From the NCBI GenBank assembly GCA_048013815.1, contig CM106586.1, forward strand, positions 17,112,001 to 17,176,000: a DNA stretch of 64,000 bases, in the 5' to 3' direction. Positions 1 through 42,612 of the stretch are shown piece after piece (position 1 is the first letter of the stretch; each line of letters opens with the position of its first letter). The translations under genes were made by a program, and so were the position numbers. The DNA is from Setoptus koraiensis (taxonomy: Eukaryota > Animalia > Arthropoda). Under the pieces are notes generated by a model that searched no databases, was not told the DNA's origin, and worked only from the letters and a program-made list of their open reading frames with translations.

Positions 1-339
1 TTACACAGCCGCACACTGGCTCAATGCACAGTATGCAAATTTGTCGCCATTTAGCCCCCTCCGAAATTGCGCTACTTGTTCCGACACGGAAGTGAACACA
101 TATTGCATCGGCTAATACTCATGCTCATGCACTGGAGGCAATAGATTGGTCTTGAGCTTCAGCTTACTACACAATGCTTATTATTAGCTTGCTCGCTTAT
201 TATTAGTATCATGATTAACAATCATATTTTCTATTTCTTGCCTTTCAAGCAATGCTAACTTTATTTACGCGCTAGTTTACATTTAGCAAAGTTTTAGTAG
301 CAACAACAATCCCATGCTCACACGTTGAATTGCTTAAAA

Positions 340-1400
340 CAAATCGCTTCACAGATTAAGCATTTGGATGCCAGCCAAGAGCATTCATTATCACTGACTA
401 TAACGGAATGAACTCCGACAATCCACACTGTCCACCGGTAGTTGCGCTGTATCAATCAACCTTCAGCTAACAACAACAACTCGTTGTCCGGATTCTCCAG
501 TCTTGCGTTGGGCCCAAACGCAACAATACTGTTCATTGTCTCTAATCGACTTACACCACTCGGTTCATAGGGACAAAAGATCTGAGCCCGAATTCCACAG
601 GTCAAACGAAGCCTTGCTGGAACACTACAATTTGTTATGCACAACTTACGGCAATTCCATATACCTTCTCATGGGCTTGAGGATTGGATCAGATTTATAA
701 AATACCATGGTATTCTTGCGACAGAAATCATCAGCTTGGAAAATTTATGGAGAACATAAGATAGCTTCGAAAATGCAGCAAGTTGACTGATCAGATATCA
801 GAATAAAGATTCTGGCTGAATAGTGACAGAACTTTGTTGTGTCAGCATCACAAGTTTCTTCTATATAGCCTGAGAGCATGATTATCGGACGGTGTGATAT
901 TTTTTGTAGATAGTTTACATGTTAGTTCTATAGATCTCATAATCACGCAACAATCAATGCAGAGACAAAAGTGAGGATACGTCCCAGAAATAAGAAATTG
1001 ACGTCACACACAAGCAATCGTTTGCGATCCAATAAGGATCAGCGGAGGATTGAATGACCAAGTAACATCGATTGAAAAAATACGCCCAGAAGGACGAGAA
1101 AATCCAAGATAAAAATCGACTCTGAGCTCTTCTTGCCAGATGATGTGATGCGGAATTCATTTGAGGAATCGCTCTATTTAATCGCCTGAAACTCAGTCTT
1201 TCAATTGACACAAGATCATCATGTCCAAGCGCCGGTCAGAGTCGAGAAGACCATCTCTTTTCGCCGTCAGTGAGATTAGGTTTACTTAGCAACTCCATAA
1301 CATCCTGTTAGATACAATTGAAGTTGGAGATTATTGTGAGAATAACCGATTATTTACATCTTAAGATATTACTACACAAAGAGATTGTAGGTTATCTGAG
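340..1400 (-). pseudogene. Decayed copy A of an unidentified coding or mobile-element family (stops and frameshifts); boundaries approximate
   Basis: The minus-strand remnant IFCPYEPSGVSRLETMNSIVAFGPNARLENPD (about 490-585) aligns with ISCPYESSYMSLLKGMDTIV--GPNAQLENPD at about 3995-4085. DNA similarity also appears at about 1335-1395 vs about 4775-4845. No intact long ORF. Confidence 0.4.
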
Positions 1401-1420
1401 ATAACTTACAATACCCCTTC

Positions 1421-2031
1421 CTAAATAAATAGCATGTTGATTTTGTTATTAGACTATACTTTTGGATGAGTCAAGATGCACTGTGGTAGTTACTGGTGTT
1501 GTTGTGTAACGATGACAGCGTTAAATTAAAGCTGCAACATACGACGTGAGATATTCAGCATTAACAGCTGATAATGGCAGTGGCATTTCTTAGAGTACAG
1601 TGACATCCCTTGCATTGCGAAAATTTTTATACATTTGTGACACAAAGACGGCAACAACCTCTTGTACTCTTGCCTTCATTCCAAACATTACAAATCATCC
1701 AGAGCAAATGGCACCCTCACTATTTCTGGAAATTGTATAGATTATATAGCAACAATAGAAGGCACAGTATCTCACAAAGTAGTAGAGCATGATCTGCAAG
1801 ATTCCATCTGAACATCAGCAATACAACATCGACTGTAGCGCGCCGGATAAAGTTATAGTAAGTGGCGAGTATTCTGTTGTTTACGGTAAGGTGAGTTTAA
1901 CGACACCCAATAACTTGAGGAATTATTTTTCTTCTACTATTCGACAGTATATACCTCTAACCACTTGTTGCTTTTCTCCTTCCTCGCGGACACATATTTA
2001 CCATGTATTCTAAGTAGGATGCATGCAGTAG
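1421..2031 (+). pseudogene. Inverted partial duplicate of the mevalonate kinase upstream region, exon 1 and intron 1 (donor locus 10147-11363, minus strand)
   Basis: 1421-1590 matches rc(11170-11363); 1630-1790 matches rc(10740-10905); 1810-2031 matches rc(10147-10375). It encodes CSAPDKVIVSGEYSVVYGK followed by gtgagt at 1891, against CSAPGKIILSGEYSVVYGK/gtgagt in MVK. The intron copy ends at aagtag (2017). Confidence 0.92.
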
Positions 2032-3719
2032 ACCACCGATACGTCAAAAACAACGGAGTCGCCCCGCAACTGCCCAACGTAAAGGCAAATGGATCGGCGG
2101 ATGCTAACATCAACAGCAAAAGTGCCCTGGCTTTGGTGGAGGTGAGGCGAAAATTTGTCCAGTATGCTGAAGAGAATCCCGACAAGGTGAACGAACGCGA
2201 CTTGAAGCGCCTCAAAACCGACGACTGGTATTTGAAACGTTACCTGTTGGCTAGAAATAGGAAGGTCCAAGACACTTTAGACATGCTGAAGCACACAATG
2301 GAATGGCGCAACGAATTTGGCATTCACCTGTCCGAAGATTCCATGTTTCCGCAGGAATTCTACAAAGTAGGCGCCCTATTTCCGTACGAAAATGATAAAA
2401 AAGGCAATTCTGTCCTGTATATGCGCATCAAATATCACAAGAAAATCACCGAACTAGTTGAGGTAGAAAAACACTTTTTGGTGCACACCTTGGAGAAAAT
2501 AGATCGCATAACAAATGGCAATGGCTTAGTAATAGTTTTCGATTGTCACGAGGCCAGCTACTCGAACTGCGACATGGAATTCTTGCAATTCTTGATTTCG
2601 TACGCCGCCGAACACGCACCCGCCGGACTCCAATACATAATAGTGTACAAGTTGCCCTGGGTACTGAATGCCTTTTGGAGTTTGGCCCAAAAATTGTTGC
2701 CTGCTTATCTGGCGAACAAGATTTGCTTCTGTGACGAAACAAGCATTTTGCAGTGCATAGACAAGGATAATTTGCCTGACTACATGGGTGGATCCTGTCG
2801 GCGCAACTACCGCTGGATTCCGCCAGGCAGCCCATCAGTGTTCAAGCTTGCCAGCGCTTACGGAATTTCCGACGAGGATGTAGAAGGGTTGTTGCCTCAT
2901 TTTCAGGCATTTTTGGATGAGGCCGATGAGGTGCTCAAGAGAAGTGACTACGTGGATCCGCCCGCCGCGATAACGCAATACATGAACAATCCCGAGATCG
3001 CCCGCGACATGATGGCCGACTTGGTGCTCGGCTCCGGCGAGCGCAGTCAGACGAATACTGTGGAAAACAGCAACAACAGCAGATCACAGCACCATTTGAA
3101 CGCTACCCAACCCGTTGGTCACGACAAATCACTGGTGCGTGTATTCCCGCAACGATTTTGCTTATTCACACCCGATTCATTTGACGGTATCTGTAACGCA
3201 ACCCTGACCGTGTTCAATCCAAGCCAACACGATACTCTTGCTTTCAAGCTCCAAACAAACAGACCCGCGGCCTACCGGGTTCAGCCAGCCCGAGGTTTGG
3301 TGCAACACGGCTCGTCTGTAAGGCTCTACATATCACTATTAGAGGAGCACGAACAGGGGGACGAGTTTCTATTAATTGCTCAACGCGTGCCGGCACACGT
3401 AGAAAAGATGCCAGCCAGCGAGTTTGAGTCCCTTTGGCAACAACAATCTAACTATGTCAAACAACAAACATGTGTGAGATTGGCCTCCCAGATCAGACGA
3501 GGCGCTCAACTAGCCACTGTTTCGGGTTGTGGCCAAACAACTAACAAGACAAAGCCGACATCGACATTATCTAGACAACAACAACAACAATTGAATAGTG
3601 ACACCCAGATACACGAATTGATAGCCACTTGCCATTCATTGAAACGAAGCCAGACTCTTTCAATACTCATCAATGTTATACTCTTGTTGATTATCATAAA
3701 TCTTTTATATTTTAAGTGA
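2019..3719 (+). CDS. MOSPD2: Motile sperm domain-containing protein 2-like (CRAL-TRIO + MSP domain + C-terminal TM anchor); intronless, 566 aa from the ATG at 2019
   Basis: CRAL-TRIO_N motif (TDDWYLKRYLLARN), SEC14-type core (GLVIVFDC...YIIVYKLPWVLNAFW), MSP domain (LTVFNPS...LAFKLQTNRPAAYRVQP) and hydrophobic tail ILINVILLLIIINLLYFK. The ORF-track TTG start at 1965 lies inside the copied MVK intron. Confidence 0.9.
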   Translation: MHAVDHRYVKNNGVAPQLPNVKANGSADANINSKSALALVEVRRKFVQYAEENPDKVNERDLKRLKTDDWYLKRYLLARNRKVQDTLDMLKHTMEWRNEFGIHLSEDSMFPQEFYKVGALFPYENDKKGNSVLYMRIKYHKKITELVEVEKHFLVHTLEKIDRITNGNGLVIVFDCHEASYSNCDMEFLQFLISYAAEHAPAGLQYIIVYKLPWVLNAFWSLAQKLLPAYLANKICFCDETSILQCIDKDNLPDYMGGSCRRNYRWIPPGSPSVFKLASAYGISDEDVEGLLPHFQAFLDEADEVLKRSDYVDPPAAITQYMNNPEIARDMMADLVLGSGERSQTNTVENSNNSRSQHHLNATQPVGHDKSLVRVFPQRFCLFTPDSFDGICNATLTVFNPSQHDTLAFKLQTNRPAAYRVQPARGLVQHGSSVRLYISLLEEHEQGDEFLLIAQRVPAHVEKMPASEFESLWQQQSNYVKQQTCVRLASQIRRGAQLATVSGCGQTTNKTKPTSTLSRQQQQQLNSDTQIHELIATCHSLKRSQTLSILINVILLLIIINLLYFK

Positions 3720-3849
3720 CCCCAATTGACTACATAAATCCACTCAATATAGGTCAAAACCGACGGTCAGCAGTGGCTCTAGTCAGAATCGGATGAGTTC
3801 AAACATCGGCAAAGAATATCTCTACATTTCAAAGATCTAGCTAATGATC

Positions 3850-4860
3850 TCAACAGTCCAGTTGTATGAATATAAGATTTCTGAAACCATAGAAGGTTGC
3901 GATCCAGGCTCGGCCAAGTCTTTTATCAATCGGTCAATGGTGATTATATTCCTTTCGGTGAATATGCAGTATATCATCATGAAAAAACCCTCCGTCCGGG
4001 TTCTCCAGTTGTGCGTTGGGCCCAACAATAGTATCCATTCCCTTCAATAGACTCATATAACTCGATTCATACGGACAAGAGATCTTAGAAATCATCAATC
4101 CTTGGATAAATACTTTTGAAAAGTTTGCAAGTGGTGGATTGATAAAATACCGGAACGAGGTCCTAAATATTTGCAGAACTCGGTTGTGCCAGCATCAAAA
4201 GTTTCGCTTGTCGGACCTAAGAGCATGACTTCAATGGTGAGAGATGAAGCTAAAATACTAGTCAGTAGCCCGGAAAGGGGTCGACGAACCATTATGGTTG
4301 ATGCCTTCGAATCGAAATATGACCTTTTTGAACATTTAGTCAGCATTACAAACCTCCGATGATCTGATGTCTTCTTATGAAGAAATCTATCAAGGGCAAA
4401 GATGCGCGATAAAATCAAAATTTGTGATAAACAGAATATTTCATTAAATGTCTATCGACAACGTTTGAATGATAATGACCATTCTTCATTTTTGTATCGT
4501 CCTCATATTTATATCTGATTCTGGAAAGTAATCAGCCGTGAACGTCACTGACCGCCTTCGATGTTGAGCCAAAATAGAATCAATACAATTTCCTGCCATT
4601 TGGTAACGGCTTGTTCATTCCATAATCTAACAATTGATCGTCGTTCTGTATTTGAGACTATTTAATCGAAATAATTTTATCGGTTTCGGCGCATAATTCT
4701 ATAGTTAATCCATCCATGAACGTAACTGATTTGAATAGTCAGGATGTAGAAGTTTCTAAAAATCTAAAGAATAACCTGTGAGAATTATCTACACTTGCTT
4801 GAGATTTATCTTAAGTAAGGTGTTCATAACATTGTAAGTAACTTTAAGGAATAAGTATTA
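3850..4860 (-). pseudogene. Decayed copy B of the same unidentified family as 340-1400; boundaries approximate
   Basis: Same-strand paralogy with copy A (GPNA-LENPD motif). Also rc(4555-4605) caaatggcaggaaattgtattgattct...gaaggc resembles 1704-1765 and its MVK-side counterpart. Multiple in-frame stops. Confidence 0.4.
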
Positions 4861-7468
4861 TAGTTATAGGTAGTTATGATGAAAAATAATTACTTATAGA
4901 TTGACAGCACTGATAGTTAGTCCATTAACTGCGCGACGATGCAGACTTATCAAGAGGAAGGTCAGAATACGATTCGTCTTTGGTGATAAAGACAATAGAG
5001 AAGGGTCAAACTTTTTACGAAGTCTCGCTGACATTAAAAAACCCAAGGTATAGAGATTGTGCAAAGATTTATATCAATTTTATATTCATATATTTCAGCC
5101 ATTTAATAGATTTTCTATGACCTAACATATGTTTAACATTCTCGAGTAAGCAGCAGTTTACTTTCAACGACATCTTTCCTGTTCTTATTTCTCTAAATAA
5201 TAATCTAGAAGAATTGTCGATTTGAAGTATCTTCTTCCAAAGACTTATCATTTAATCGTGGTATTCCCGTTCATTATTATTAGCTCATGACTAGTTTCAA
5301 TTTAATAAAACTGAGATTAATTAAAAACAAGCTTGACAGAGCACCTTGTTGTTGTTGTTTTCTGTGGATTGTGCGACAACATGTTCCGCAGACTGTCGCA
5401 TGATGCATGCTAGCATTATAGTTACTGGTTCATGTTGGTTGTACAGCATGCTAGTTGAAAGTCGCAACTTTTTTGTTGACTCTTGATGATATAATACTTG
5501 ATTTAACTGCTTTATAGATGGTGACTGTATCAGATCGTTTATCAGCACCAACAACAACATCAACGACAACAACAACAACAACAACAACGAGGCACATGTT
5601 AGCCGTGATACAAAGGTAAAATATGTATATGTTCTGGGAATTCCAAGATGTTATAAGGAGCGAGATAGTAAAAGGCGTCATTAGATTATTTGCTACTGCC
5701 ACTGTATGTGGTATGTATGTGGTGGCGATGGTAATTTGTTGTAGCAACGACAACAAATTGCATGCAACATGTCAAGATATGATCAATAGAAGATCCCCCA
5801 TAGAGAGAAAGTGAGACCAATTCTTATTAACAAAGTAATGAAACTGGTGATCATGTTTGACTTTAAAACCGCTCAGTGTTGACGATATGTAACCCTGTCT
5901 CATAGCGATAGTTTTGTTTCTGTTTTTATAACATATTCTAATGAGTGATTTTTGTTATTAATTTCTGGGTTTTACGTGTGCGTCAACTTATAATGTTTTA
6001 TTTATTATTATGTGAGTTTTGTTTATCAATCAGCATTTATATTGTCACTGCCGAGGGTCAATGATGTCAACAAGGATCAATCAAATCACCTATAATCACT
6101 TTCTTTCAAGTCTAATCAAGTCTAGTCCCGGATCGACTAGCTACTAACTAGGTATGCTATGCTATCTGATATGTGGATATTCATCATCTGTCTACCTGCG
6201 ACAAACATTGCTCATTGCTATCTATTAAATTAGTCAAGTGTTTATTATCGTGATTATTGTGAGATATGACGACGACGACGACGTCTAGACCGAAAAAAGT
6301 TCACAAACAAATGTAGGGAATCAGCATCAAGGTTCTATTGATGGGATGCTAGAGGTGCGGCTAGTCAGAGGATGTTGCTCCCAGAGATTTTATGATGGAG
6401 CAAAAAAACAGATACGCAAAAGAGAGAAAGTATTGTGCCAGATTTTGATAGTAGATAGAATGTTTGTGCGTCACAATGTTTGCACGCAATAACATAGAAA
6501 CAAAATGATTGCGTGCAAATGTAATGCCAAATACCTCATCTCATTAATATTTAATCACGGGAACTAAATGCTCTAAAGAATTAGAGCAGCAAAGCCACCG
6601 AGGAATTAATTAGCCGACATAGATATAATTATTGTGTGACTACTGGATGTAGACAAAAAACTTTACAATGATTAGATACAATGCAGAGACTCTTCTCTCT
6701 GAAAACTGTATATGGTGCATATAAAATGATGATAACTCACTATAGGGTTGACAGTCTCTATATTAAACTCGTGATGAGCTGACCGCGCGCTTGTTAGGTA
6801 TGAAATTGAAATGACTTGCCTGTAATTTTATTCTATTTATTTTGAGCACGTGCTCAGGTAAAACAGCACCGCATGGGCTCCAGACAAGTTACTGGGTTAG
6901 TTGCTACTGATACAGTCATTATCATTTGTATATGTATATATGGTTGAGTATAATGAGTTTGCATTTTGCGCCTCATTCTGTCAACCTGCACTAACGATAG
7001 AATGATCTGAAGTTGACCCGCTCTGTTCAAGTTTCAACTTTTGTTTTATAGATGCTCTCGAACGGCCCCGGTCTTCTTCTGTCTATTGAGCTAGATTTCC
7101 AACTTTTCACGTCATGACCTACAAAGAATTTACAATAAAAAAAGGAAATATTCAAATGCATTGCGTTTGTTGTCCGTTTAGCCAGCGACAGTTTTGCCAA
7201 GACCACACCATATATCCGTTACTAGTATCTTCATCATTCTCGGATTCATCTTCAGCTTTTACAAATGTATTCTATAATGATCAAAACAAAAAAGAAAAGA
7301 AACAATGGACAGCAACAGCAAAGAAGTATCTCACAACGAATACAATCAATACTTTAGAGAGCATGTTTTTATTTTGTTGAATTAGATCGCGCTAATGTAA
7401 GCAACAATCCATACAACAGCAACAACAACGCCTTATTATAGCCCACTTGACAAGAATCATTGAAGAAA

Positions 7469-8602
7469 ATGATGAAATCAAGAAATCGTTTAGTGTCCAA
7501 TAGTGAGACAGCTTCGTCTAATCTGAGATTATCTAACCTAAAAAATGATTTAGCCAATACATCTAATATTGTGCAAAATATCAGAACACCCCAATCAAAT
7601 ATAGTGTCTGCACAAGCTCTGAGAAAGCGCCGTTCCTCTATCAATGTATACGATCAGCCATCTAGTTTAAGTTCGCGTCTCCGACAATTGGAGACCGACA
7701 TGCTTAGACTGGATGAAGACAGGACAAAATTATACGATGATACTCATTCGACATTGGCCCAATACGAGCTTAGATTGAAAGAGATTCAAGCAATATTGAG
7801 ATCGCGCCAAGACAATGTTGAGAAGTATGTAGAAGACATGAGAATTCTGTTGGATGCAAAATCAGATTTTGAGGCGCAACTTAAGACTCTAAGGGAAAAA
7901 CATGTAAGTTTATGCTTCCAAGTGTGTCTATTGGCAGTTAGCAATCTTTTCATCAAACTGTCTCTAAATTGTCAGCTTAAATGATAAACTTTTCTCAATG
8001 AATCGCAATTTAAATAATTGCTAACGTAACAAAGCAACAAACCGTTTACTCTACTTGCACATTGTCGCACTATATCAACATCTACAACCACTACTGAAAC
8101 CTAGGAACGGTTACAAGATAAATTTAGCCAACGCGAAACAAATATATCACGTGAGATTAAATTGTTGAAGAATAAATTTGAATTGTTGGAAAAAAATAAA
8201 ACATTTAGAACCATCTTACAAAAGTCTAATACTAATAGACAAAATAGCTCAATTGGTGATAACAACATTGACCTACATCAGCTAGATAATCGATCGTCCA
8301 GTCCGGTGTCATTGTCCGATAACAAACATTCGGGTATACCTAACAGAGGGCAAACAAAATCTAATTCATACGCCAGCGGCGTTCATATCGATGATAGTGC
8401 AAGTGATAAAAGGAATAGATTTAAATCACTAGTCAATCGACTAATTTGCTATCCAAGATATTTACTTAGAACTAGAAAAGTTTCAAGTAGCGATCATGGA
8501 CAAACTAAACCTAAACCAAATGGCCCATTTTGGCGTTTCATTCGTCTTTTAACATGGTGGTGCAGTGTCAAGAAACGTCCATCACCAAATACTACACAAT
8601 AG
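7469..8602 (+). CDS. Uncharacterised coiled-coil protein; exons 7469-7903 and 8105-8602; 5' end uncertain
   Basis: Heptad-rich ORF (LRQLETDMLRLDEDRTKL...LKTLREKH). A phase-0 donor gtaagt at 7904 and acceptor cctag at 8104 join in frame to ERLQDKFSQRE...LKNKFELLEK. Confidence 0.6.
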
Positions 8603-9028
8603 GCACAACAAAAATTTATATAAATATACACTATTTATTTCGTGTTGGTTAGTTAACATATACTTGGAGTAGCAACAACAATGTAAATATGGCTATTATT
8701 ATTGTATCATTGTATCATTATTAATGTCGCTCAAGCCAGCGACCGCCATGATGGCACTAATGGCAGCGTGCGGCTTCTTGAGTTAGTAGAGTACAACTAT
8801 CACATTATGAATTTACACCAAGCATTTTATTATTAACAAATAAAAAGGTATTCATCAGCAGTTATCACACTAACAGTATTTTAGAATTTTTGAACAACAT
8901 CCAAAAAGAAATGAAGATACTCGTTGAACTACTCATTGCCCACAGTTCTCTCTAAAATTTCTAGACTGATCTCATCGCATCAGTAACGTTACAAAATGTT
9001 TTAATTTTCTTCTTGGTCTGTTCAACTG

Positions 9029-10500
9029 CTAGCTGAGTAATGAAACTTGTGTTTTAACTCCATCACCTCCTATTTGTGTTCTATAGCATCTGTAGCCTCT
9101 TGAGGTCAAAAGGTGCGCCAAATCATCTAGCTTTTGGCTGTCCAAATTCCTCCATAATACAAAAGCCATACCTCCACCACCGGCACCTGTCATCTTGGCA
9201 CAATATCCACATTTAAGGCAACAATCGATTATATCTGATAGAGTGGTATGACCAACTCCCAGTTCATCTAACAGTTGTTGATTTTTAGTTAGTAGGGCAT
9301 CCATTGAGGCGCTGCCACCGTACTGTTTAGATTGAAATTCATCCCAAACAGATAAAGTCACTTTATCAATGTCGTCAAACAACTTCTGCGAATCAAAATC
9401 TGAATCATTTAGTCTATCAGCTAATTTTTTGCACAAAGTCTTTGAGCTTCGTGCAACGCATGTATCCACCAATAGCGCATTCCAGGCCTCGTTTTTAATG
9501 TCAGTGATTAGTTGCTTGATTTTACCCTGCCGAAATAACATTAAACCGCCGTGAGCTATTACATTATTGTCAATTCCTGATGGTGTTCCACAAAAATGCC
9601 TATCAAGTTGATACGCCCACTCACTAATCATTTGTTTCGATGGATCCGATTTAATATCTTTCATTTTCAGGAGAGCACCGCAAAGCGCTACGGAATAGGC
9701 TGATGAAGAGCCTAGTCCACAACCTACAGGCAACTGTGATTCAATTGATACATTTATAGCTGGTCTACCTGATGACATGTACGAGTCAGTTATTGCCAGA
9801 TAAGATAATAAGAAGGCGAAAATTGCATCTTGGCAGGAGTTTTCAACAATATCACAGTTTTGTTGTAGATGGTTGTTATTGTCGCCAAGTTGCTTCTCGG
9901 AACTGTTCAGCTCATCGCTATTGTTCTTTGAACGAACAATGTAACGAGAATCCATTAGTGGACTCAATTTTTTCAATAACGTATCGTTAAAATTAAGTTT
10001 TTCATCACGATTAGACACTAAATTGTAGTCTCGCAGATGATCCGATGGCCAAGATCTGATATGATTGAAATCTGACAGTTTAACTCTAACATTGCCGTCA
10101 TTGCTTGGCCTAATAGAGACATGTGTTCTCATGTCTATGGTAGCCGCTACTGCATGCTACTCAAAATACATGATAGATATGTGTCCGCGAGGAAGGAGAA
10201 AAGCAACAATCGCAGCAACAAGTGGTTAGAGGCACACACTGTCGAATAGTAGAGAGAAAAATTATTCCACATGTTGTTGGGTGTCATTAAACTCACCTTA
10301 CCGTAAACAACAGAATACTCGCCACTTAATATAATTTTACCCGGAGCGCTACAATCGATGTCGTATATGTCATTTTTCTGACAGCTTGAAGCATTCGGCG
10401 TCTGTTGTTCACTGTTGGTCCGATTAGATTGGTGATTCGAGTCACCTGCAGACATTTTCTCTGCGTAGATCTCTATCTGACTTTCAATGTGATTTTCCAT
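9029..10500 (-). CDS. MVK: Mevalonate kinase (GHMP family), 443 aa; exons 10500-10297 and 10156-9029 (140-bp intron)
   Basis: SAPGKIILSGEYSVVYGK|HAVAATIDMRT splices in frame. The ATP loop ESQLPVGCGLGSSSA, GTPSGIDN and KMTGAGGGG are the canonical MVK motifs. Confidence 0.93.
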
Positions 10501-13360
10501 CTGTGGTTATTTTTGGTTATTCTATCGTATGAGTGATACTAACACTCTTTGAAAGACACAAAAGAAGATGAATAAAGCTTTATGTTGTGGTGACAAAATG
10601 ATACTTTCTAAAGGTACGATTGAATTTATAAATATTTTGTGTATTCTAGTATTGTCATTCATCTATTAACTCCAACTTGTGGTTCATGATAGTAGCTGTT
10701 GATGTTGCTGTCGTCCAGGAGAAATCGATGACTTATAAATCCTGCTCTATCACTTTGTGAGAGAAGGTGCCTTCTATTGTTGCTATATAATCTATACAAT
10801 TTCCAGAAATAGTGAAGGTGGCATTTGCTCTGGATGACTTGTAATGTATGGAATAAAGGCAAGAGTACAAGAGGTTGTTGCCGTCTCTGTGTCACAAATA
10901 GTGTTATTTTTCGTCGAGCTTCGAACAACTACAACACCGGTCACTAAAATGCATTAAGGTCTTGAAGTTGCTTGAGCGTTGTTTGTTGCAAACAATGATC
11001 AAATAAATTCTAGTAAATTTTAAAAGACTCACTTGGCTAACATCGATCTAGATTATTATTCAATAATATTTTCTATTTGTAGATTCATTACATCGCCAGA
11101 ATGGAGGGGGAAACATCTATATCTAATTGGCAGGGTTCGAAAATGTTAGATCGCAGTTATTTGAGCATGGAAACTAAAATAGTAACAAGTTAGTCCAAGA
11201 ACTACCACTGCCTATTATCAGCTGTTGATGCTGAATATCTCTCATCGTATGTTGCAGCTTCAACGTTGCCATAGTTGCACAACAGCACCAGCAACTATCA
11301 CCACAACAGTTCATCTTGGCTCATCTAAAAGTATAATCTAGTATCAACATGCTATTTATTTAGCCAACGGCAATAAAAGAGCAGCAATCTTATCATTTTG
11401 GACTGAATGATATTGCCCGTCAAACGGTTCATAGCTGCTTCATAAATTCATAGTAAATAGCTTGCGATGATGCTCTCCAGACACAGTTTGATCTTATACA
11501 GACACACAAAGAACTGATAATTTACTGGTGAGAAGAGGGTTTATGCTTGTCAGAAGAGTTTGATAGATTTATATCGACCGCAGCATCGGCTAGTGATGAT
11601 TGTAATCACTAATAGCAAACTTGCAAAGTCTATCTGCCAAGTAACAAATCTCTAGTTGCCAGTGGTTCAAAGTTGTTGTTGTTGCTGTCTCGAGCTCAAG
11701 GAACTGTTTTTTTTCTGTCATCAACACCATCGTCGAATTACTGCAATGTTAATGCTGGGAAAAACTCAATTCTGACGCTGCCACTTGATGGCGTCAGTCC
11801 AACAAAAGTTGATTTGTATGTTTGCTTATTTACACGTTTTATTCGTTTGCAAGATGTTGATGATTGTTTTGTTTATTTTTTCGCTACTTGTTACTTCTCG
11901 GTATTCCTACCTTTTCTCAACACTGATGTGTGCGTCTATGTGTTATTATGTAAGCTGATAACAACGTCGACAACTATAGGCGTTGATGCTGTCGTCATAG
12001 CGCGTTATATCTTGCTTGTAAGAGATAGGAAGATTGATAAGAGAAGTGATAGATAATTTGAGTTAATTTTGCTAAATTTTTGTGAATATATCTAGTTTCG
12101 AATGTGTGTACAAATAGTGCGCCTATTACTAGTAGAGCTTTGGTGGCGGTGCTGTTGTTGTTGTTTTGATTTGATTTTATTGCCTTGAATATTGCCCAGA
12201 GTATGAATAGTTTGTTTTTAGAATAAGGTGAATTCTCTTTATAAGGTTCGCTTTTAACAATCACTTCAAGAAAAAGTTTGTGTGTTTGTGTTCATATTGA
12301 ATTGTGGATTCATTCGAGACATTTGTTTTTCGTCGATATGGTAATGAGTTGTTGTTGCTGTTAGCAAGATCCTTTCTCCTATTCCATTGACAGTTGTGTG
12401 ATGCCGACAACTTGTCGCTCATTACTTTTTGGCGTGTGTTTGTCAATTGTGATATGGTCGTTGAGACGTTAGCTGTTTAGCCGGCCTTTAGCTCGATGAC
12501 ATAACAACGAACAAATATCGCAAGCACGATTGATTAAATTAAAATTCCTCTTACACAGCTAATGGCTGATGGTTGTTGATTCTGTTAGGCGCAGTTCAAG
12601 TCGACCGCTACTAGCTATATTTGCATTGCTGGACTGCTAGAAATCGTGATTGATGCTGGCTTCGCTGCCGCTGTGTAGTGTTTCTCCGAAGCGAGCATTC
12701 GCTATATTTGGATTAATTTGCGTAGGCTCCCATTGTGCAGCATGTTTGATATGACGTTGCAATATTTTTCTCGAGTGACGTAATCTCCAAACGATGACGA
12801 CCTGCTATATACAGGTATCAATGTAGCTTATTTCTAATTAGGTTAGTGCGTCGAGGCAGAAAAGGGATTTATGTTCAATTTATTCATGTCGAATCAAGTG
12901 TCCTGCATGCCGTCTCAAGCATAAGCACGTGAGATGGCTGGCATTTTCGTAAGAGCTGGCACATGTGTGAGGGATTGAGGCGAACATGTGGATAGAAAAA
13001 TTCCGTTTTGCTCGCTCTTGCGCAAAATATTCCTGTTTGTGTCTCTGTGAGCCTCTCTTGGCCTGTGCCTCACTGGCTGCGCCTCATGGTGCAATGCTCA
13101 TGCAATACCATCATAGATGGCATTGATAAACTTTGTGGCACACGCACACCGACACACGCAGGGGCTCGTGTTGGCGGCACAGTGCGCCAGGATTGTGCGT
13201 ATGTGTGTGTGTGTGTGTGATGGTGCTACCAGACAGAGCGGCGCATACATTACACAAGATGGACGCCCGGCGAACTATTATTACCGCTGGCTGGTTGTTC
13301 GCCCTTTAGCGCCGCCGCGCAACTCCACAGGCTGTGGGTAACTCACAACCATTGTGGGTG

Positions 13361-13405
13361 TTCGATTCGAAATCTGCTCGATTCGAACAGTTCGACTTAT
13401 CGAAT
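13361..13405. promoter_or_regulatory. TCGA-dense cluster (6 TCGA in 45 bp) inside a GC-richer island (about 12.9-13.9 kb) upstream of the 852-aa gene; candidate promoter element
   Basis: ttcgattcgaaatctgctcgattcgaacagttcgacttatcgaatg; the core resembles the DRE (TATCGATA). Confidence 0.3.
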
Positions 13406-15058
13406 GCAGTCTCCATTATGCAGATCTGCATCGGGTGAACATCGGTTGTTGCTACCATATATTATGTGTGTTGCGAGTCCTATACGGCAGAATGTAGCCA
13501 ATCGTTAGCGTCGCGTGTACCATTGAGGTAGGCCTGTTGGGAGAGCTTGTAGCTCGATGGGAGATTAGCCCACGACGAGCAGCGCCCTCTTTCGTGGTTG
13601 CGTTGTTAAGCGTTATTTCTATCGGCTCGTCTGTGATATTGTATTGCAAGTAGTGGCAAGTAGCTAGTGTTGGGCCGACACACATGATCGCCTTAAGTTC
13701 GCAAGTGCCTTGTGCGTGTGTCTGTCTCTACGGTATCACACAGTGAGTGTGTGTGTGTGTGTGCGTGTGTTGTGTTGTTCGTCTTGCTCAGTGGCTCAGT
13801 TCGATCCATTCGCGCATTCGTTCGTTCGTTCGTTAGACTCGCTAACACACTCACTAATGCTCGATGATACTCATGCATTCATGGATCATTCGCGATTCGT
13901 TCGATTCTATGCTAGTTAGTATATATACCACGTTCAAGATGTCGGACATTGTGAGATATTCCACCAAATTGATTATCTAGTTAACAGCAACAACAACAAC
14001 AGCTCACTGCACACACACCATAATCAAATAGTAACAAACTAATTGACGTAGATCATTGGAATATCCATCAAACCCATGACCAGTGTCGGATGCACACAAC
14101 CAACAACAAACTTCTACTCACAAAAGAAGCAAGTTTAAGCTAGGAAAAGAAAAAGAAGAAGAAGCAAAACAATAAATCACAATAAATATCATCGACTCAT
14201 GCGGCCGACAATTGTCGAATTAATACCATAATACCATTGAGATGAGATAGTAGTCACACACTCACAGCACATTGATCAGCCGGCTCAACCATCAATCTGA
14301 TAAGCGAGATTCGAATAAGAGTGAAAAAAGAGGGAATCATTCATCTTCAAACTATCAATACATATTAGCAAACAGACACACAGATAGATAGTTCAAGGAA
14401 TTCATTCATACTTAAATCACGACTAAAGATTACATCATCAATTAAAGTTGCGCAACAAACATCAATACTGAGAACTCTGGTACCTTTCAATAGTGAATCC
14501 AATTGTTGTCCTCGCAGCGCACACACACACACACTCACTCAGACGCACGAGAGAGCAAGATATAGAGAGAAACAGAGAGAGCTAACAATCTGAAAGTATA
14601 AGGGGTAGTGGATTGACGAGAAAGAAAAAAAATATTATTATATAATCATATTGGCTTCACCATCAACACTAACCAGCAACAGAAACACTTAAACTCACAG
14701 AGATGATGCAGCAACATCAGCACCAACATCAGGTTCTATTCTATTATGAATAACGAACATACTCATCACAAACTTAATACATACGCGATTGAAAGAAAGA
14801 AAGCTTCCATTGCTACCATCACCACTTAAATCGATTCAGCATATATTCGAAATTAGCCAAAAAGCACAACAAACTTTTTGGTGGATGAAGCACGATATTA
14901 AGTTATACAACATACATTAAAATACATCATCAACACTTGGCAAGTTGCAAATGAGCGACCGACTTTAGGTTTGCATTACAGCAGCTTATAAAGAAACGAA
15001 CACACCAATAGTAAACATCAAGACAGATTTATTTATTATATATAGTTGCCATATAGTC

Positions 15059-17793: not shown

Positions 17794-18111
17794 TCAAACG
17801 CAATTTTGTGATGGTGCTTGCATGACGGCTGGTAATTCGGGGGGCTCACTGTACGGGGTTACTTCTAACACACTATCTTCCCGCAGCATGAGTCCTATAG
17901 TGGCGGGTGACTGGGCCCTGGCTTGACTAAAATAATTTGTCATGGGGTGACTGTCAGCCATGACTTGGTGTTCATATATCAGTTTTTGTTCCTCTGGTGG
18001 CCTCTTGGTGATGCCGGCTATGACCATTTTGACATCCAAAACTGTGGCAGTATCCTTGACATCTATAAACATAGTTGTCTTCTGACGTCTCACCATGAGG
18101 AATAAATCCAT
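17794..18111 (-). CDS. ELOB: Elongin B (ubiquitin-like subunit of the Elongin BC / Cullin-2/5 ligases), 105 aa, intronless
   Basis: MDLFLMVRRQKTTMFIDVKDTATVLDVK...KRPPEEQKL...ARAQSPATIGL...TPYSEPPELPAVM matches the Elongin B signature (MDVFLMIRRHKTTIF...ARPQAPATVGL...PPELPDVM). Confidence 0.93.
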   Translation of the reverse strand: MDLFLMVRRQKTTMFIDVKDTATVLDVKMVIAGITKRPPEEQKLIYEHQVMADSHPMTNYFSQARAQSPATIGLMLREDSVLEVTPYSEPPELPAVMQAPSQNCV

Positions 18112-18835
18112 TGTTATTTAATTCAAGATATAATAATCTAGATGATATAATAATCTTCTAACCACAATTTTATTGTTTGTTTTATCTGATGGTAATGATG
18201 AAATTTTAGCTATTGCATAACACACCGATTGAAATTGCAGAATTTATATGTGTGTTCGAAATGCTAAAATAAAATGTGCGCTATTTATGAAAATCCCCAG
18301 CCCACTGTCACTCATGGAGCGAACAGTAGGGTGGGCGCAGTGCGCACATGAAACAGAGTTGGCTTTTCGCACCGAGTTCGCACTTGTTTTCTCTTGCTAG
18401 TTGAAATAGATGCGAACTGTTGTGCCGCTAGAGGCGCTGTAAACTCGAGCGCCACAAGCACAAGTGCGGTCAAAAAGCGCTCTCTAACGGCCTATCCCTC
18501 AACCAGCGCACACAGGGTGCGAAGCGAGCAAAAGCGAACAAAAGAGAACGAAAATTGAACACATGCGACGTCCAGCCGAATGCCTCTCGCACTCGCCAGC
18601 CGTTATCGATAGAGCACAACAAAATAGGAAAATCTCAAGTGCCGATGGCTCCATCTCGACTACACGGTATCAACTTGATTTGAACCCACAAGGTCCCAAA
18701 GGAGGGACGGGATGGAAATCCGATTCCTTCATTTCTCTCAGGGAGCTCAAATTCTCGAAACTAACGATTTTTCAGCCGGTGACAACCTTGAAAAATGCTA
18801 AAAGGCAACCAGCACGATAGAGACAATATCATATC
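18112..18835 (-). promoter_or_regulatory. ELOB upstream region/5'UTR, a diverged copy of the PSMA7 upstream region; includes a perfect DRE TATCGATA at 18604-18611
   Basis: Colinear blocks shared with 20108-20525, including tcttctaaccacaatt, tgatgaaattt, aaatgtgc-ctattt-tgaaaatc, catgga-cgaacag and gccgatggc-ccatctcgactacacggt. Confidence 0.8.
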
Positions 18836-18899: not shown

Positions 18900-20525
<1,626 letters not shown>

Positions 20526-25265: not shown

Positions 25266-27924
25266 CTGTCAATAACCAATAATTAATAAATGTGTTCCAA
25301 TTTGGAGGCAGATAGCGGGAAGTGGATAGAGACAAAATAATGATCAGTTAATAAGTTCTAAGGTATCAAGCAGTGCATTTGCATGTTGTGAATATAAGGA
25401 ACTAATCTAATTATGGTCCCTTATTGAGGTGACCGAATTAGGTCTCGGAACCCAGATAGAGAGAGGGAATTCAATTTTGCTAAGTGAGCGCGCGTGCCAT
25501 ACATTTCATTAGAACCAATCCGTGTAGCTAAATGAGCCAGCGCTGCGATTAATTTTGCGATATCCGATCTAATGCGAGGACTTCGCAAATGCATCCGCTG
25601 CGAGCGGTGTGTACAAGACGTCGTCATTTCTTGAGTGTTTTTAGTAGATTAGAAACGGCCAATATTCATGCACCATATATCAACAAACAACAGATGGAAA
25701 TCGGCTTACAAATTGATTAGGAACCGCGAGGACATAATTTATTGCTCAGTCAGACGTCAGACGTAGTAAGCACACCACATCTAACAACAAGCGCCGCTAT
25801 ATCTGATAGCCTATTCAGATCAACGATCAGGTGGATTAACACCGACGGCGCCTTACAGATTTATCCCGAGAGCACGGTCATTCGCAGCAAATATTTAGCT
25901 AAGACGACCCACTACTATTCGGGTTGGCATTTCAAAATGAGATCAGCATCACACACATTTTCCATATAATCCTAATAATGCTTACAGTTCGAAATGAGAA
26001 TTATAATTTACATGTGTCTGCTGTGTTTGAGAAGTCGGATTGGTAACGAGATGAGATTCATTCTCACGCTGCCACGTCGTTTTTGGCCAAAATCTTCACT
26101 GTTGTGCCTGCCAATGATTATCACAAATGTCATAAACGTCTTTCAGGTGTCTCATTTCACCTGTCCACAGCAACATTATTATGTCATAGCAAAGTGTGGA
26201 TGTAATACGGAATGTATAATGTCTCTATCAGAATGGACTCATCGCATGATGATGACATGGCGGTGGCGACACCGCCATGTGACTATAAATAAGGTTTATA
26301 ATTTATGCAGCGACGCAGCGTAATCCTGTCATCATGTCGGCCGGCTGAGTGGCTGGCCGGCCGGCCGATCGATGAAGAAGAAAGTTATTGAGAAAGTGAA
26401 AACAACGATGGTGGCAAGATGATATAGAGAATGCGATGTTCATATCTACCGTTTAAACTATTTTGTCCCGTACCAGTGCGTGCACGCAAAGATATGCATG
26501 ATAAAATTTATGATGACTTTTCATTTTCAATGGCAGTTACCGTTACATCACTATTTGCTGGTCTCGTTGTTGTCATCGTGAGTGGTAGGCGGCGGCTGTC
26601 AAGTGCAGCAGCAATGGTAACAGAATGAAAGAGCATAAAAATTGATGATAGCCACTGTCTACATAAATAAACAAGTATGTTGACATGTTCGTATTAGACA
26701 ATTTTATCGTCACTTTGCATTTACCAGCGCGCCTTGTCTCTACGAGAATATCGCCAGTCTTGCGATACAAAGCCGGTCGCATGTTAAGCATCAGCAACGC
26801 ATATCGTAACACTAACAAACAGCAGCATCGAGACATGGCAAAAGAAGAAATTTGTTCATCTGTTCATCCAATTGGAGAGAGCTTGAAAAAAGTCAAAGAT
26901 AAGGAGAATCATAAATTAAAATAACATCTCTCTTGCTTGTCGCCGTTGTGTGTTGCCCGTTGGTTGGCCTGGCCGAACACAACAACAACAACACTTAATT
27001 AAACTAGCGGACACACGAATATAAACCAGTCGCCAACGTCAAACCATTTGCATATGAGATGATGATCGGAGCATAGTCAGGTAGCGGCCATTGGCTGTTG
27101 CATCTGTTATCTCGCCCCTTTTAATGATCTTCCTCACAAATGTTTATCCATCGTCGCATTGCCTATGCACATCATAGCCAAATGGCAACACTCTTGGCCA
27201 TAATAATTTTGTTATGTTTGAGTGCCGCCGAGTCCGTTTCGTTCGCAACGGTCATCTCTCTCGCTCGCTCTCTATAGCTATCTCGAGAAGCGCGTGCTAA
27301 AAGACATTAGTAACAGTAATATCGGATAGGAGCAGCACTCCATTTGACAGGGCGACCAAGACCATGTGTGTTTAGTTTATACACTAGCCACTGGTAATGT
27401 GGTTAATATTTAAATTGCTTTGTGTGGCAAGAGAAGCTTACAGCGGCAGCAGCAGCGGCATATCAGATGAGGAGAGAACTCCTTCAAATGGATGTTGGCA
27501 CGACGGCCATTCAATATTGGATAAATCAATATGACCAGCGTGTTGGCTGGCGCCACACACTTCAGTGCTCGGTGTCCAGCGATAATGATCTAGATGGCCA
27601 ATGACCGTCTTATGTATATGAGAATAGATAAATATATCATATTGGCTGCCACTATCTATCTTGTTACCAGCTGGCAGCATCTCGCGCTAGATCTCTATCG
27701 GTATCACGGTGAGAATCGGCCTTCTATTGTTATCATCTCGTCTGATAGGTCTCTTGGGGAGAAAGAAGCCACTACCTACCACACTTCGGCTGTATCTATG
27801 CGCACATAAAACAATTATTGGCCCCAGAGACAACAATATATATATCGCTCGCTCGCAACGAAATATTGTTAGTTAAGAATTAATAAGTGGCAAATGCAGC
27901 CAATAGAATCACAGCAAAACTCAC

Positions 27925-28723
27925 CTGAATTTGTTGGGTTCAAAGTCAGCACTCTGCCTGATAACGTCCATAGCACTTCGTTGCTGGCACATAATATTTT
28001 GTTTGTTGGGAGCATCGCCGTCATGATGGTGATAGTAATGATTCTGCTGTTGTTTGCCAGAGCCCAACATAGTTAAGCGGCTGTTGGTTGCTGTTTGCAT
28101 CTGATCGATTTGATTCGTTTGCTGTTGATCGTTCGACGATGATAAGTGCTGTTGTTGCGCGTTAATTGGTGTAAAATTTTCACCACAAAAATGCCAACCA
28201 GCCGCGCTGCCACTTGCTTTTGGCTTGCCGCTACTCGCCAGATCATAGGACCAATCGCCGTACATTATAGAGTTGCTAGTAGTGATTGGCGTATCGGCGG
28301 CGACAAAAGTCGAATTGATGCTGTTGCTTTGCTGTGTCATGGCATTTGTGGTGGCCGCCAATAATGGGTAGGGCAGACAGTCGTAGGAACTAGCCAAAGG
28401 CAAACCAGACGACGGGTCTACCTCGGCGGTGCAACGCATACCTTGCGAATCAATACCACTTAGTAGCTGATCGGAAGCGGTGGCATTGTCCTGACAATCG
28501 GTTGGTTGGATATTTGAGGAGCTCATAGTGTTGACAGATTTTCCAAAGTAGCTACCAGGTGTCGAGTAGAATGGCGGATACATAGGATCGTTTCTGAAGC
28601 CATTCTCTTTGAACACTCCGTACCTGTATGAGGCCCATTCTCTGATGAAGGCGCGAGATCTGTCACTGTTTGTTCTGTCTGATGAGACCACGGTGTAATT
28701 GATGGGCAAATGAATCTTGTGAC
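27925..28723 (-). CDS. CLCA: CLCA-like protein exon 4 (metalloprotease-like domain, HExxH degenerate; Cys-rich region)
   Basis: cag|GT CAC AAG ATT CAT gives GHKIHLPINY. FIREWASYRYGVFKENG corresponds to CLCA HEWAHLRWGVFDE, and DAPNKQNIMCQQRSAMDVIRQSADF to EAPNxQNxxCxxRSTWEVI. Donor AG|gtgagt at 27924. Confidence 0.9.
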
Positions 28724-28960
28724 CTGTGCGTATGTCAGTTTGTTTGTGAGGGATAATTAATTTAGCATGCAGGATATTTGATGATGTATTAGTGCATATT
28801 AGATGATGTGTGGTTACAGGATGGTAGATTATTGAAGGAAGTTGGAAATTGGCAACAGAAATCAATGGAAATGAATGAAATGAGACCATTCTAAATGAGA
28901 TCCTAACAGGGGCCGTGATGACATGACAACTGCACGATTGTCCTGCTTAATTAATAGCTG

Positions 28961-40034: not shown

Positions 40035-42612
40035 CTATTCAAAACGATGTTTGACCATTTGGGCGATAAGACATAAAGATTGGATAAAGCAGCATTAGTT
40101 GTAATAGTTATAGTGCTTGTAATGTGGTACTAGTATTAAAAACAACCACGAAAAAAATGGAATAGACAAGTGAATATAATGAGACAGAGAGGCTCAACAG
40201 AAAGCGACAAGAGAGAAAAAAATAGGAAATAAACAGAACGCGACCAGACAACACACACATTGAAAACAATTGTTATTGTATTACAAGACTCTGTGTCTTG
40301 TACTTATTATTGTTATCACTGTTTCTAGTGATAGCTGGCTCACTCGATGGCTGGACTGCCTAACGATTGATGTTTGATTTATTCATTGAACGAAATAATA
40401 ATAATCACAAATGGAGCAGCAGTTACCGTTCTGTATAGGTTCAGGTTACCAAAAGTGATTATTTATGAGCGCCAATGTGTCCAACTTGATGTTTTTTCCA
40501 TCATGCCCACGTACATACACGATAACTGTGTGTGTGTGTGTGTGTGTACTGGCCCATGCCTAACCACTTGTTGAGGCTATAAATTAACAGGAGCAACAAG
40601 ACCATGTCAAAATTGGTTATCGTGAATCATCATACGCATAACTACAACTTTCTGATTTACTACAAGCTCATACCTAATATCGACGATATCTACCTATTTG
40701 TATCAGATTGAAACAACCTGAAGACAAACCCAATTCGATTAGGGTTTCAATAGATGCCAGTTGGTGGTCGACAACTTGTTTCTCAATCAAAAGAAACTCG
40801 CACAAACGAAGACATGGAGAGAAAGAGAGCGAGAGTTTCTACCTTTCATCCGACCATTGGCTACGAGATATATCAGAGCAGATATCATTGATACTTGAGC
40901 TCCAAGTGCAAATCATGATATGGATTAGTTTGTATTATCATTAATGGAATTAATTTGAGCACTTACCATCGCTACACACCGACATATACACAGGCAATCA
41001 AAACAGCATAGAGAAGAAAAATCTATGATTTGTTGATCATGTATCGATATCGACTTTGATGGCATTGGTTTTACTGGGTTAACGAATTGACCACTCAAAT
41101 CAATGCATAAAGGTTGATGACCACCTTTATAATGGCCAGCGATAAACCTTTGGTCAGCATCAATGGTCACAACAGCAACAACCGACCACCACAATAAGGG
41201 AATAATCATGAATGCACAAACAGTGCAGGGCAAACATACATGTATTAGCAACAAGAACTGTTTTATACATTACTATGTAGCGCTACAGTCACACAACAAA
41301 CATTTGTTGTGTATAATGACATTTGCTCTCTCGGCTTCCATTATAAATTTGTTGTGTCTATTTGCTATAATGCATTTGCAATTAGTAATTGTGGTAGTTG
41401 ATGTAATGTTAGTTAGTAGACCGGCAAACAAACAATTGATATCTGTGCGTATACAACTATTTCATGGGCTTGTTGTATCGCCGCATCAATTAATGAGATT
41501 TGTAAACTAGCTTCAAGCGTCGATTGAATTATCAGCGCCATGATTATTATCATCAGCTTATCAGTTTTATACTAATATTACATAGGATAAACAAAGATTG
41601 CTTATAATATGTCTAAGCGGCGTCATCGGCAGTAACAACAACAATACTTGCTACTACTTACACATCTACTCGGATATGGTAGGCAGCTGCTCGATGGAAT
41701 CGCACGTAATGATTGGCTCATGGTCATTCCCAACATATATCATCGTAACATGGCAATAGTTGTACATGTGTAATAACAATTCTTGTATATAAATATATAT
41801 ATATACATATGTATATGTATGTATGTATGGCGCATTAGTCATTGTTCAGTGATGATGTCCATTGAATGGGGAAATCAAAGCAACAAGCGAATGATGATAA
41901 CATCAAGATCGATCCATCTTGCAATCGGGTTTGTTGCGTTAAGCATTGGAGCAAAGAAACAAAGTTAATAATGATAAATATCAGACATCATCATCGTCGT
42001 GTTGTTGTAGCGAGGAAATCAACAAAGTACCTGTTGCCACTGCCGTTCATTTGTATTTAGCCCACAATACATAATACCACTTCACTACTGCTGGATTTCT
42101 ACGCCATTTACGCCATATAGGCCATCAGTGGTGTTGGGAACAACTGAATCGTCAAATTTGCTGGCCATACAATTGTGCAATTGTAATAGTTATAATAATA
42201 ATAATAATAACCATAATGATGAGCAGATTTGATTATAAAACGTTCATCATAATCGACTATCATCAGAAACAACAATCAACATCATCATCAAACAAAATCG
42301 CGATAATTGTGATTTGCAGTTGTTGTTGTTTCTATTTGTCTCTCTGATGTTGAGAGCTGCATCGGTGGCTAGAATCATCTGGGCATGTTGTTGGCCAGAG
42401 TTTTCTCACACATTCACACACACACACTCACTCACACCAAACAATAACCGCAACACTGGCGATTTTGACTAGAAAAAGGACCGACAAACTCTACAAATCG
42501 TTACAATGTTTTATATTATGGCATTGCAGTATGTTGTTCCGAAGTACCGATACCGGTATGGCATGCATATAGCGATACGCATAGGCGGTAGTAGCGCTAA
42601 ATCTGGGCTTAC

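Follow-up and report, generated by a model that had tools for sequence, protein, structure and literature searches.

The stretch analysed here, a 64,000-nt segment of the Setoptus koraiensis genome to which we refer as the window, contains an intronless open reading frame (ORF) for a MOSPD2-like protein and, in the opposite orientation, the two-exon gene for mevalonate kinase (MVK). The DNA that precedes the MOSPD2-like ORF and extends into its first codons (1421-2031, plus strand) duplicates the MVK 5′ region (11363-10147, minus strand) in inverted orientation and with internal deletions, as found by self-BLAST, a repeat finder, and pairwise and three-way alignments. Four nucleotides, GATG, are inserted in this copy at the former MVK splice acceptor and contain the ATG that opens the ORF. 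The best explanation, which we rate as rather probable, is that the 5′ end of MVK was copied and pasted against MOSPD2, that the GATG insertion supplied the start codon at 2019, and that transcription starts inside the copy. Overall, the locus is a well-documented chimera at the DNA level, the function of which we infer.

The MVK-derived copy and its polarity

The copy, the ORF that it adjoins, and the corresponding parts of the donor gene are arranged as follows.

1421-1597 (+): copy block 1, distal MVK upstream region, matching 11363-11191 (-) at 79% identity
1633-1800 (+): copy block 2, MVK upstream region, matching 10899-10732 (-) at 91-92% identity
1821-2023 (+): copy block 3, matching 10366-10151 (-) at 85% identity and, with a 4-nt gap, reaching 2031 (10147)
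1821-1890 (+): remnant of MVK coding exon 1 (last 70 nt), with SAPDK in place of SAPGK
1891-2017 (+): former MVK intron 1, 127 nt as against 140 nt in MVK
2018-2021 (+): derived insertion GATG, with the ATG at 2019-2021
2022-2031 (+): first 10 nt of MVK exon 2, CATGCAGTAG, a 10/10 match to 10156-10147
2019-3719 (+): MOSPD2-like ORF, 566 codons, intronless, with CRAL-TRIO domain, MSP domain, and hydrophobic C-terminal tail
2032-2095 (+): N-terminal tail of the ORF, codons 5-26, neither MVK-derived nor alignable to the 5′ region of the relative introduced below
10147-11363 (-): source segment in MVK, comprising upstream region, exon 1, intron 1, and the first 10 nt of exon 2
10500-9029 (-): MVK gene, two exons
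9029-10156 (-): MVK exon 2, with GHMP kinase N and C domains (Pfam PF00288 and PF08544)

The predicted product of the recipient ORF contains a CRAL-TRIO domain (PF00650, residues 119-258, E=1e-23), an MSP domain (PF00635, residues 373-477, E=4e-11; both from Pfam), and the hydrophobic C-terminal tail LSILINVILLLIIINLLYF. Two reports describe MOSPD2 as a combination of CRAL-TRIO domain, MSP domain, and C-terminal membrane anchor (PMC6030701, PMC8996327), and the predicted protein has this architecture of the MOSPD2/VAP-family tethers of the endoplasmic reticulum (ER). The donor is identified as MVK by its GHMP kinase N and C domains, by the N-terminal APGK...GEH/Y..V motif in exon 1, and by matches to named mevalonate kinases. 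Its exon 1 encodes SAPGKIILSGEYSVVYGK and ends with ...TAC GGT AAG at 10297, followed by the donor GTGAGT; intron 1 occupies 10296-10157, and exon 2 begins with CAT GCA GTA GCG at 10156. For comparison, we used the nearest available relative, a Logan assembly of SRR33593474, in which the MVK locus lies on contig L005. The product of MVK exon 2 is 76% identical to that relative's P0042. The first MVK ATG (10500) is not kept in the relative, which has ATA there, and the ATG at 10455-10453 (gagaaaATGtct), which is kept, is probably the real MVK start.

The copied DNA comprises MVK upstream sequence and then the final 70 nt of coding exon 1, continues through intron 1, and stops 10 nt into exon 2; two internal pieces of the source are missing from it. 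The first is about 291 nt long (MVK 11190-10900). The second amounts to about 346-365 nt (MVK ~10731/10712-10367) and includes both MVK ATGs (10500 and the conserved 10455), in agreement with an earlier note on this DNA, which had put the loss containing the MVK ATG at roughly 360 bp. The same note had read a glycine-to-aspartate change in the SAPGK motif, and this change, to SAPDK, is indeed present as GGT>GAT at 1847. In the former exon 1, three nonsynonymous and two synonymous copy-specific changes amount to no coding constraint. The former intron retains, intact, the donor GTGAGT (1891-1896), a CTAAC branch-point-like motif, a pyrimidine tract, and a TAG acceptor (2015-2017). Copy block 2 carries an upstream ATG at 1789 and an initiator-like TCATTC (1676-1681), the latter made by a copy-specific substitution. 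As block 2 is the best conserved of the three, we asked whether it might be an RNA gene, and an Rfam search of positions 1-13000 gave no matches.

At its right-hand end the copy reads ...taagtag, GATG, CATGCAGTAG, whereas both the window MVK and the relative's MVK read ...gagtag directly followed by CATGCAGT(A/G)G. The probability of finding a 10/10 match by chance after a 4-nt gap is ~1e-5. The inserted GATG can be read equally well as a tandem CATG/ATGC duplication plus a C>G change. Of the 10 nt that follow it (CATGCAGTAG, 2022-2031), the first nine form codons 2-4 (H-A-V), which are former MVK codons in their old frame, and the last one begins codon 5; the same 10 nt also offer alternative splice acceptors, CAG at 2026-2028 and TAG at 2029-2031. 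The MVK homology ends at 2031/2032, so that two parental sequences meet at a defined junction, with MVK-derived DNA from 1421 to 2031 and MOSPD2-specific DNA from 2032. The ORF spans this junction: ATG 2019 and codons 2-4 stand on the donor-derived side, and the frame crosses 2031/2032 and runs for 566 codons. The earlier note had proposed that a 4-nt GATG at the copied acceptor, absent from MVK, creates the start codon and that the first residues, M-H-A-V, come partly from MVK exon 2; both the insertion and the origin of H-A-V are borne out, and its positions for the donor (1890), the exon start (2018), and the ATG (2019) prove exact on direct reading. Its broader proposal of a chimeric gene origin holds for the 5′ end and the first four codons, but not for the body of the protein.

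As the copy includes donor intron 1 as well as non-transcribed upstream blocks that extend at least 860 nt 5′ of the MVK ATG, it must have arisen by a DNA-based event and not by retroposition. A retrogene test of the recipient showed that the MOSPD2-like coding sequence is intronless, as in all orthologues found, with only an A6 run at 3978-3983, and that the repeats flanking the MOSPD2 unit are 100-400 nt long and not short target-site duplications.

Comparison with the relative establishes the direction of copying. Its MVK locus is collinear with window 13608-8082 at ~80% identity, through the source segment and both of its flanks (window 11364-13608, for instance, matches L005 1-2253). The relative's MVK acceptor reads gtgagtag followed by CATGCAGTGG, without GATG, and its exon 1 reads SAPGK. 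Among 535 nt aligned three ways, 54 substitutions are common to the copy and the window MVK, 32 are found in the copy only, and 15 in the window MVK only, giving the tree ((copy, MVK window), MVK relative). The copy was therefore derived from this lineage's own MVK after the split from the relative, and it has evolved at about twice the rate of its source. Since GATG is missing from both MVK genes, the insertion is derived in the copy; the glycine-to-aspartate change and both deletions likewise read as derived there. At the other end of MVK, two ORFs of a coiled-coil-like, Pfam-less gene (7460-8602, plus strand) converge on the MVK 3′ end, and part of this region, up to window 8082, is also collinear with L005.

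The probable start codon at 2019 and the candidate leader

The case for ATG 2019 as the start codon rests on the frame in which it stands and on the conservation of what follows. No other in-frame ATG precedes the conserved N-terminal helix. The frame before ATG 2019 is closed by a stop at 1962-1964 if the leader is unspliced and by a stop 11 codons upstream if 1890 is spliced to 2018, and the next in-frame ATG is codon 89, which falls within the conserved CRAL-TRIO N-terminal region. The MOSPD2-like ORF is under purifying selection, with a dN/dS against the relative of 0.10 overall and 0.015 in the CRAL-TRIO domain. Orthologues are 75% and ~55% identical to the window protein, and all of them share the conserved sequence that begins at about residue 33 (SKSALALVEVRRKF...). 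An intact, selected ORF through the ~6% divergence accumulated since the copying event implies that a working start codon was needed throughout, and conservation from about residue 33 requires that this start lie upstream of codon 33. As ATG 2019 is the only in-frame ATG between the upstream stop and the conserved helix, the protein most probably begins M-H-A-V at this position.

The earlier note had suggested a comparison of N-termini among related species, since an ancestral MHAV start would have spoken against a new one. None of the orthologues compared starts with MHAV, and the MVK copy is missing from them. The relative's MOSPD2 starts with MSAADKNNNNSKS (MSAADK...) and has no MVK-like DNA upstream; about 36 other, more distant orthologues start with MASTKL... 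or similar. A word search with the first 120 residues for fragmentary proteins of the same or a closer species returned no matches in a protein collection from which this species seems to be missing. Across orthologues the tail before the conserved helix varies from ~9 to ~90 residues, so that a new upstream start would be easily tolerated. Local alignment of 2032-2095 with the relative's 5′ region scored no better than shuffled sequence, and DNA homology to the relative starts only at GCGGAT, at about position 2097. An ancestral ATG remnant at 2089-2091, put out of frame, was considered and dropped because the short alignment is ambiguous. The protein would then run from M-H-A-V through a variable, low-complexity tail into its conserved body.

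How the leader would be transcribed is a less certain matter. Three further features are listed here.

10596-10630 (-): predicted MVK core promoter, TATAAA at 10630-10625 and initiator (Inr) TCATTT at 10601-10596 (A+1 at 10599)
1193-1275 (+): candidate alternative first exon predicted from the sequence only, with Inr TCAGTC (A+1 at 1195), ATG 1221, and donor GTGAGA at 1270
478-885 (+) and 3986-4232: left and right copies of a degenerate direct repeat that brackets the leader-plus-MOSPD2 unit

Our best guess is that transcription would start inside the copy, downstream of the upstream ATG at 1789, with or without removal of the 127-nt former intron. Several observations weigh against this reading or parts of it. 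The pair at 10630-10596 is the only combination of TATA (at -31) and Inr within 11500-10401 and lies in a 58-nt block identical in the relative, yet this only canonical pair of MVK falls in the piece deleted from the copy. Promoter capture is therefore doubtful, and, as far as the predicted promoter is a guide, the copy probably brought no working MVK core promoter. The ATG at 1789 stands in good context, and its 63-codon upstream ORF would overlap ATG 2019 if transcription came from farther upstream. The conservation of splice signals in the copy is at chance level: the seven copy-specific intron substitutions all spare the donor, the CTAAC motif, and the AG, which is no more than chance expects, and the longest identical run is 43 nt where ~42 are expected. 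The proposal that the former exon 1 and intron serve as a spliced 5′ leader under an MVK-type promoter is accordingly unproven and somewhat doubtful. The three sequencing runs that contain the sequence are all of unknown, DNA-like kind, none being on record as RNA, and exact patterns for the spliced and the genomic junction had no matches in metagenome contigs. Polymorphism between the reference and a separate sample, X2, stands at seven nonsynonymous to six synonymous differences in MOSPD2, which may indicate a recent relaxation of constraint. The flanks of MVK can be aligned with those in the relative at 80% identity, but those of MOSPD2 cannot be aligned on either side, and synonymous divergence (dS) is about three times as high for MOSPD2 as for MVK. 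Lastly, an enumeration of ATG, donor, and acceptor combinations with donors in 1-1900 yielded two other stop-free, in-frame splice models that skip ATG 2019; both still need the MVK-derived bases 2018-2031, but make GATG irrelevant.

The first of these two models would place the promoter and the start codon outside the copy. Transcription would begin at the Inr at 1195, translation at ATG 1221, and the donor at 1270 would be spliced to one of the two alternative acceptors, CAG at 2028 or TAG at 2031, so that the MVK piece would be an intronic passenger that gives the acceptor and the protein would start MSKRRSESRRPSLFAV-(N or ID)-HRYVK.... The arrangement is stop-free and in frame when joined to 2029 or 2032, its donor being one of only two such donors in 1-1900, and a perfect Inr hexamer lies 26 nt upstream of an ATG with A at -3. 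A native promoter in 886-1420 would moreover be kept, which would explain why a promoter-less MVK fragment could be tolerated. However, one combination in three is in frame by chance, the acceptors at 2028 and 2031 follow a purine-rich stretch and lie downstream of the first good TAG (2017), and the mini-exon shows no sign of conservation. Among the orthologues, whose coding sequences are all single ORFs, neither a coding intron near the N-terminus nor a similar peptide occurs. We consider this model unlikely.

A second alternative concerns the MOSPD2 gene itself, which might be a relocated or duplicated copy, or an older paralogue, contained in a complex template-switch insertion bracketed by the 478-885/3986-4232 repeats. 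The comparison of this genome with that of the relative gives a dS of 0.9-1.6 for MOSPD2 (third-position identity 56%; window 2019-3716 against L001 10001-11596) and of 0.35-0.5 for MVK (75%; window 9032-10156 against L005 3463-4620). This gap of about threefold, taken with the unalignable MOSPD2 flanks, possibly reflects relocation, older paralogy, or a mixed sample. The gene upstream of MOSPD2 also varies: in the relative it is HgmA, and two loci from farther away in the tree have a SIR2-family gene there. A synteny comparison with three other MOSPD2 loci (L001, L002, and L004) revealed no common neighbours in the window. In view of the unsyntenic flanks and the high dS, the MOSPD2 of the window may be a relocated or duplicated copy with its parent elsewhere in this genome. 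The direct repeats that bracket the unit point the same way and may mark a larger complex insertion: positions 486-586 correspond to 3994-4088 (75% identity, E=3e-15) and 816-885 are collinear with 4163-4232, the repeat does not look coding, and the window holds no further copies of it. Under such a history, constraint may be relaxed, as the 7:6 polymorphism would suggest, and ATG 2019 would matter only for a redundant or decaying copy. A long window branch in the MOSPD2 tree adds to this side of the argument, the maximum-likelihood branch lengths being 0.70 versus 0.14 for MOSPD2 and 0.23 versus 0.16 for MVK; the window lineage is thus faster for both genes. Set against relocation are the intact ORF with its low dN/dS and the fact that no second MOSPD2 copy was found in the window. 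In addition, the window-specific excess at conserved sites is also seen in MVK (6:1, versus 22:6 in MOSPD2) and looks like a lineage effect. We do not claim a gene-specific acceleration of MOSPD2, since this relative-rate test at conserved sites is equally skewed for MVK. Relocation has, in our judgement, a small chance of being right; it is compatible with a start codon at 2019 and would change only the context in which that codon arose.

The second splice model would make the protein itself a chimera. In this case transcription would start upstream of 1789, ATG 1789 would open the frame of the former MVK exon 1 (MICKIPSEHQQYNIDCSAPDKVIVSGEYSVVY), and a donor GTAAGG at 1886 joined to 2029 or 2032 would join 32 residues of MVK origin to MOSPD2. 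This arrangement preserves the frame and contains no stop, and ATG 1789 is an ancestral feature that the relative also has upstream of MVK and that the copy has kept. However, both donor and acceptor would have to be chosen non-canonically, beside the stronger GTGAGT (1891) and TAG (2017), the counterpart of ATG 1789 in MVK lies upstream of the predicted transcription start, and the former exon 1 codons, with their 3:2 changes that include the substitution in the kinase motif, are unconstrained. A protein-level fusion of this kind seems to us very improbable.

Mechanism, age, and reality of the copy

Returning to the copy-and-paste explanation, the events proceeded as follows. After the split from the relative, ~1.2 kb of the MVK 5′ end, from the upstream DNA through exon 1 and intron 1 to the tenth base of exon 2, was copied. 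The copy came to lie 8.1 kb from its source, inverted and immediately next to the intronless CRAL-TRIO/MSP coding sequence, and the source locus was left undisturbed. The copying may have taken place by templated repair of a break or by template switching. The copy then lost two internal pieces, including MVK's probable core promoter, 5′ untranslated region (UTR), and ATG, and gained GATG exactly at the old boundary between intron 1 and exon 2. With a neutral rate of 0.0111 per site per Myr, a Drosophila figure (PMC3355041) that is valid only if it is applicable to this species, the ~6% divergence on the copy branch suggests an age of very roughly 4-5 Myr.

A staggered-break micro-inversion of 2032-10146, which would have set MOSPD2 beside a leftover copy of the MVK 5′ region and left the inverted duplicate as its footprint, was also considered. 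Two inverted copies of single-copy DNA do bracket an 8.1-kb segment, and the mechanism is documented for inversions in Drosophila (PMC3355041). However, such an inversion requires one new junction per copy, whereas L005 runs collinear through the right-hand copy, which is ancestral upstream as well as through the MVK body to 8082, and the left flank (1-1420) is not MVK upstream DNA. Both flanks of the right-hand copy are thus in their ancestral state; the event was copy-and-paste, and we reject a staggered-break inversion as highly improbable.

Mis-assembly can create inverted repeats ~9 kb apart, and the earlier note had named an assembly artefact as one way in which its proposal might fail, but contigs bridge both junctions and the two copies differ by ~9-20% plus large indels, which makes an artefact the least credible of all the alternatives, with next to no chance of being correct. 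Contigs of X1 (498-1675) and of the separate sample X2 (673-1602) span the left boundary at 1421, and an X2 contig (1968-2320) crosses 2031/2032 and carries GATG. This last contig differs from the window at three positions (2105, 2277, and 2279), all synonymous and none in GATG; bridging contigs from an independent sample with its own polymorphisms indicate that the duplication is real. Variation in the two samples includes two further details. The X2 difference at 2105 (T>A), synonymous in MOSPD2, abolishes the TAA that ends the 1789 upstream ORF, and X1 has a 3-nt deletion at 3575 within a CAA/glutamine run.

Other features of the window and relation to known chimeric genes

A second case of a copied 5′ region is present in the same window.

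18105-18668 and 20101-20415: direct duplicate of the Elongin B/PSMA7 5′ region, both genes on the minus strand, ~71-74% identity

Over about 230 nt, the sequence that precedes the Elongin B ATG (18111) is homologous to that preceding the PSMA7 ATG (~20103), and the homology ends at AATGG. The Elongin B ORF is intronless, and it is the second in the window to be preceded by a copy of a neighbour's 5′ region that ends at the ATG. One may imagine a genome in which intronless genes repeatedly receive 5′ cassettes copied from housekeeping genes nearby. A relocated, start-less MOSPD2 would there have been rescued by a templated insertion and by a 4-nt slippage that created a start codon on the former acceptor, and the old splice pair would be kept as a 5′ UTR intron. 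In such a genome, junctions would be expected at, or a few codons from, the ATG. The recurrent-cassette reading rests on two cases within 20 kb, MVK to MOSPD2 (inverted) and PSMA7/Elongin B (direct), and we regard the joint proposal as improbable.

The window as a whole is AT-rich eukaryotic DNA, and its best protein matches point to an arthropod, probably a fly. Elsewhere it contains a minus-strand ORF (27924-28889) with a match to the CLCA (calcium-activated chloride channel N-terminal) family (E=3e-11). From 46000 to 64000, the GC content rises from ~40% to 55-62%, and long overlapping ORFs are numerous on either strand. Pfam searches with four ORFs (49809-50696, 53264-54586, 57134-57940, and, farther to the left, 42494-44212) gave no significant match.

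The Drosophila chimeric genes Sdic and jingwei took exon or intron sequence from one parent to serve as promoter, leader, or first codons of a new transcription unit; both are genes of recent origin whose proteins have novel domain combinations or novel N-terminal exons. By contrast, the recipient described here is an old conserved gene in which only the extreme 5′ end, with four codons, has apparently been replaced. Hun Hunaphu of the D. simulans complex, which originated by illegitimate recombination, is similar in several respects: it is a partial duplication at the DNA level that kept a parental intron, without a poly(A) tract or short target duplication, and it acquired a new 5′ UTR with an intron and new regulatory DNA while being young enough to be read base by base (PMC1463047). 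However, Hun Hunaphu still has the start codon of its parent, and its UTRs and C-terminus were drawn from intergenic DNA (PMC1463047), whereas the recipient in this study keeps its whole body and would take its start codon from a 4-nt insertion in a fragment of another gene. The transcripts of Hun Hunaphu were mapped by rapid amplification of cDNA ends (PMC1463047), while the present case was read from DNA.

Chimeras in D. yakuba likewise arise from duplications that ignore gene boundaries and join the 5′ end of one gene to other sequence, and they often change expression (PMC5460883). Those cases are polymorphic, tandem (direct), and supported by RNA-seq (PMC5460883), whereas the copy in the window is inverted, dispersed (8 kb), alike in appearance in both samples, and millions of years old. 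The duplications at staggered-break inversion breakpoints (Guillén and Ruiz 2012, PMC3355041) resemble it in that ~1 kb of inverted single-copy DNA places gene 5′ ends beside other genes, that one copy decays by deletions, and that recruitment of a new promoter is possible. In contrast to those cases, the source copy here is ancestral on both sides and nothing indicates an inversion of the intervening segment. The case belongs with DNA-level chimeric genes and the recruitment of 5′ ends and is tidy but not unprecedented; its particular twist is a start codon that a 4-nt insertion created exactly on a former acceptor, with three donor codons re-used in frame, in an old conserved gene.

If confirmed by RNA, the locus would be an unusually legible case of an old conserved gene whose extreme 5′ end has been replaced, as 8 kb separate the donor from the recipient, an outgroup shows the earlier state, and the copy, its two deletions, and the 4-nt insertion are readable at single-base resolution. 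It would bear on how far an ER-tether protein tolerates change at its N-terminus, and on whether local copy-and-paste of 5′ regions may be a recurrent route to new regulation in this genome.

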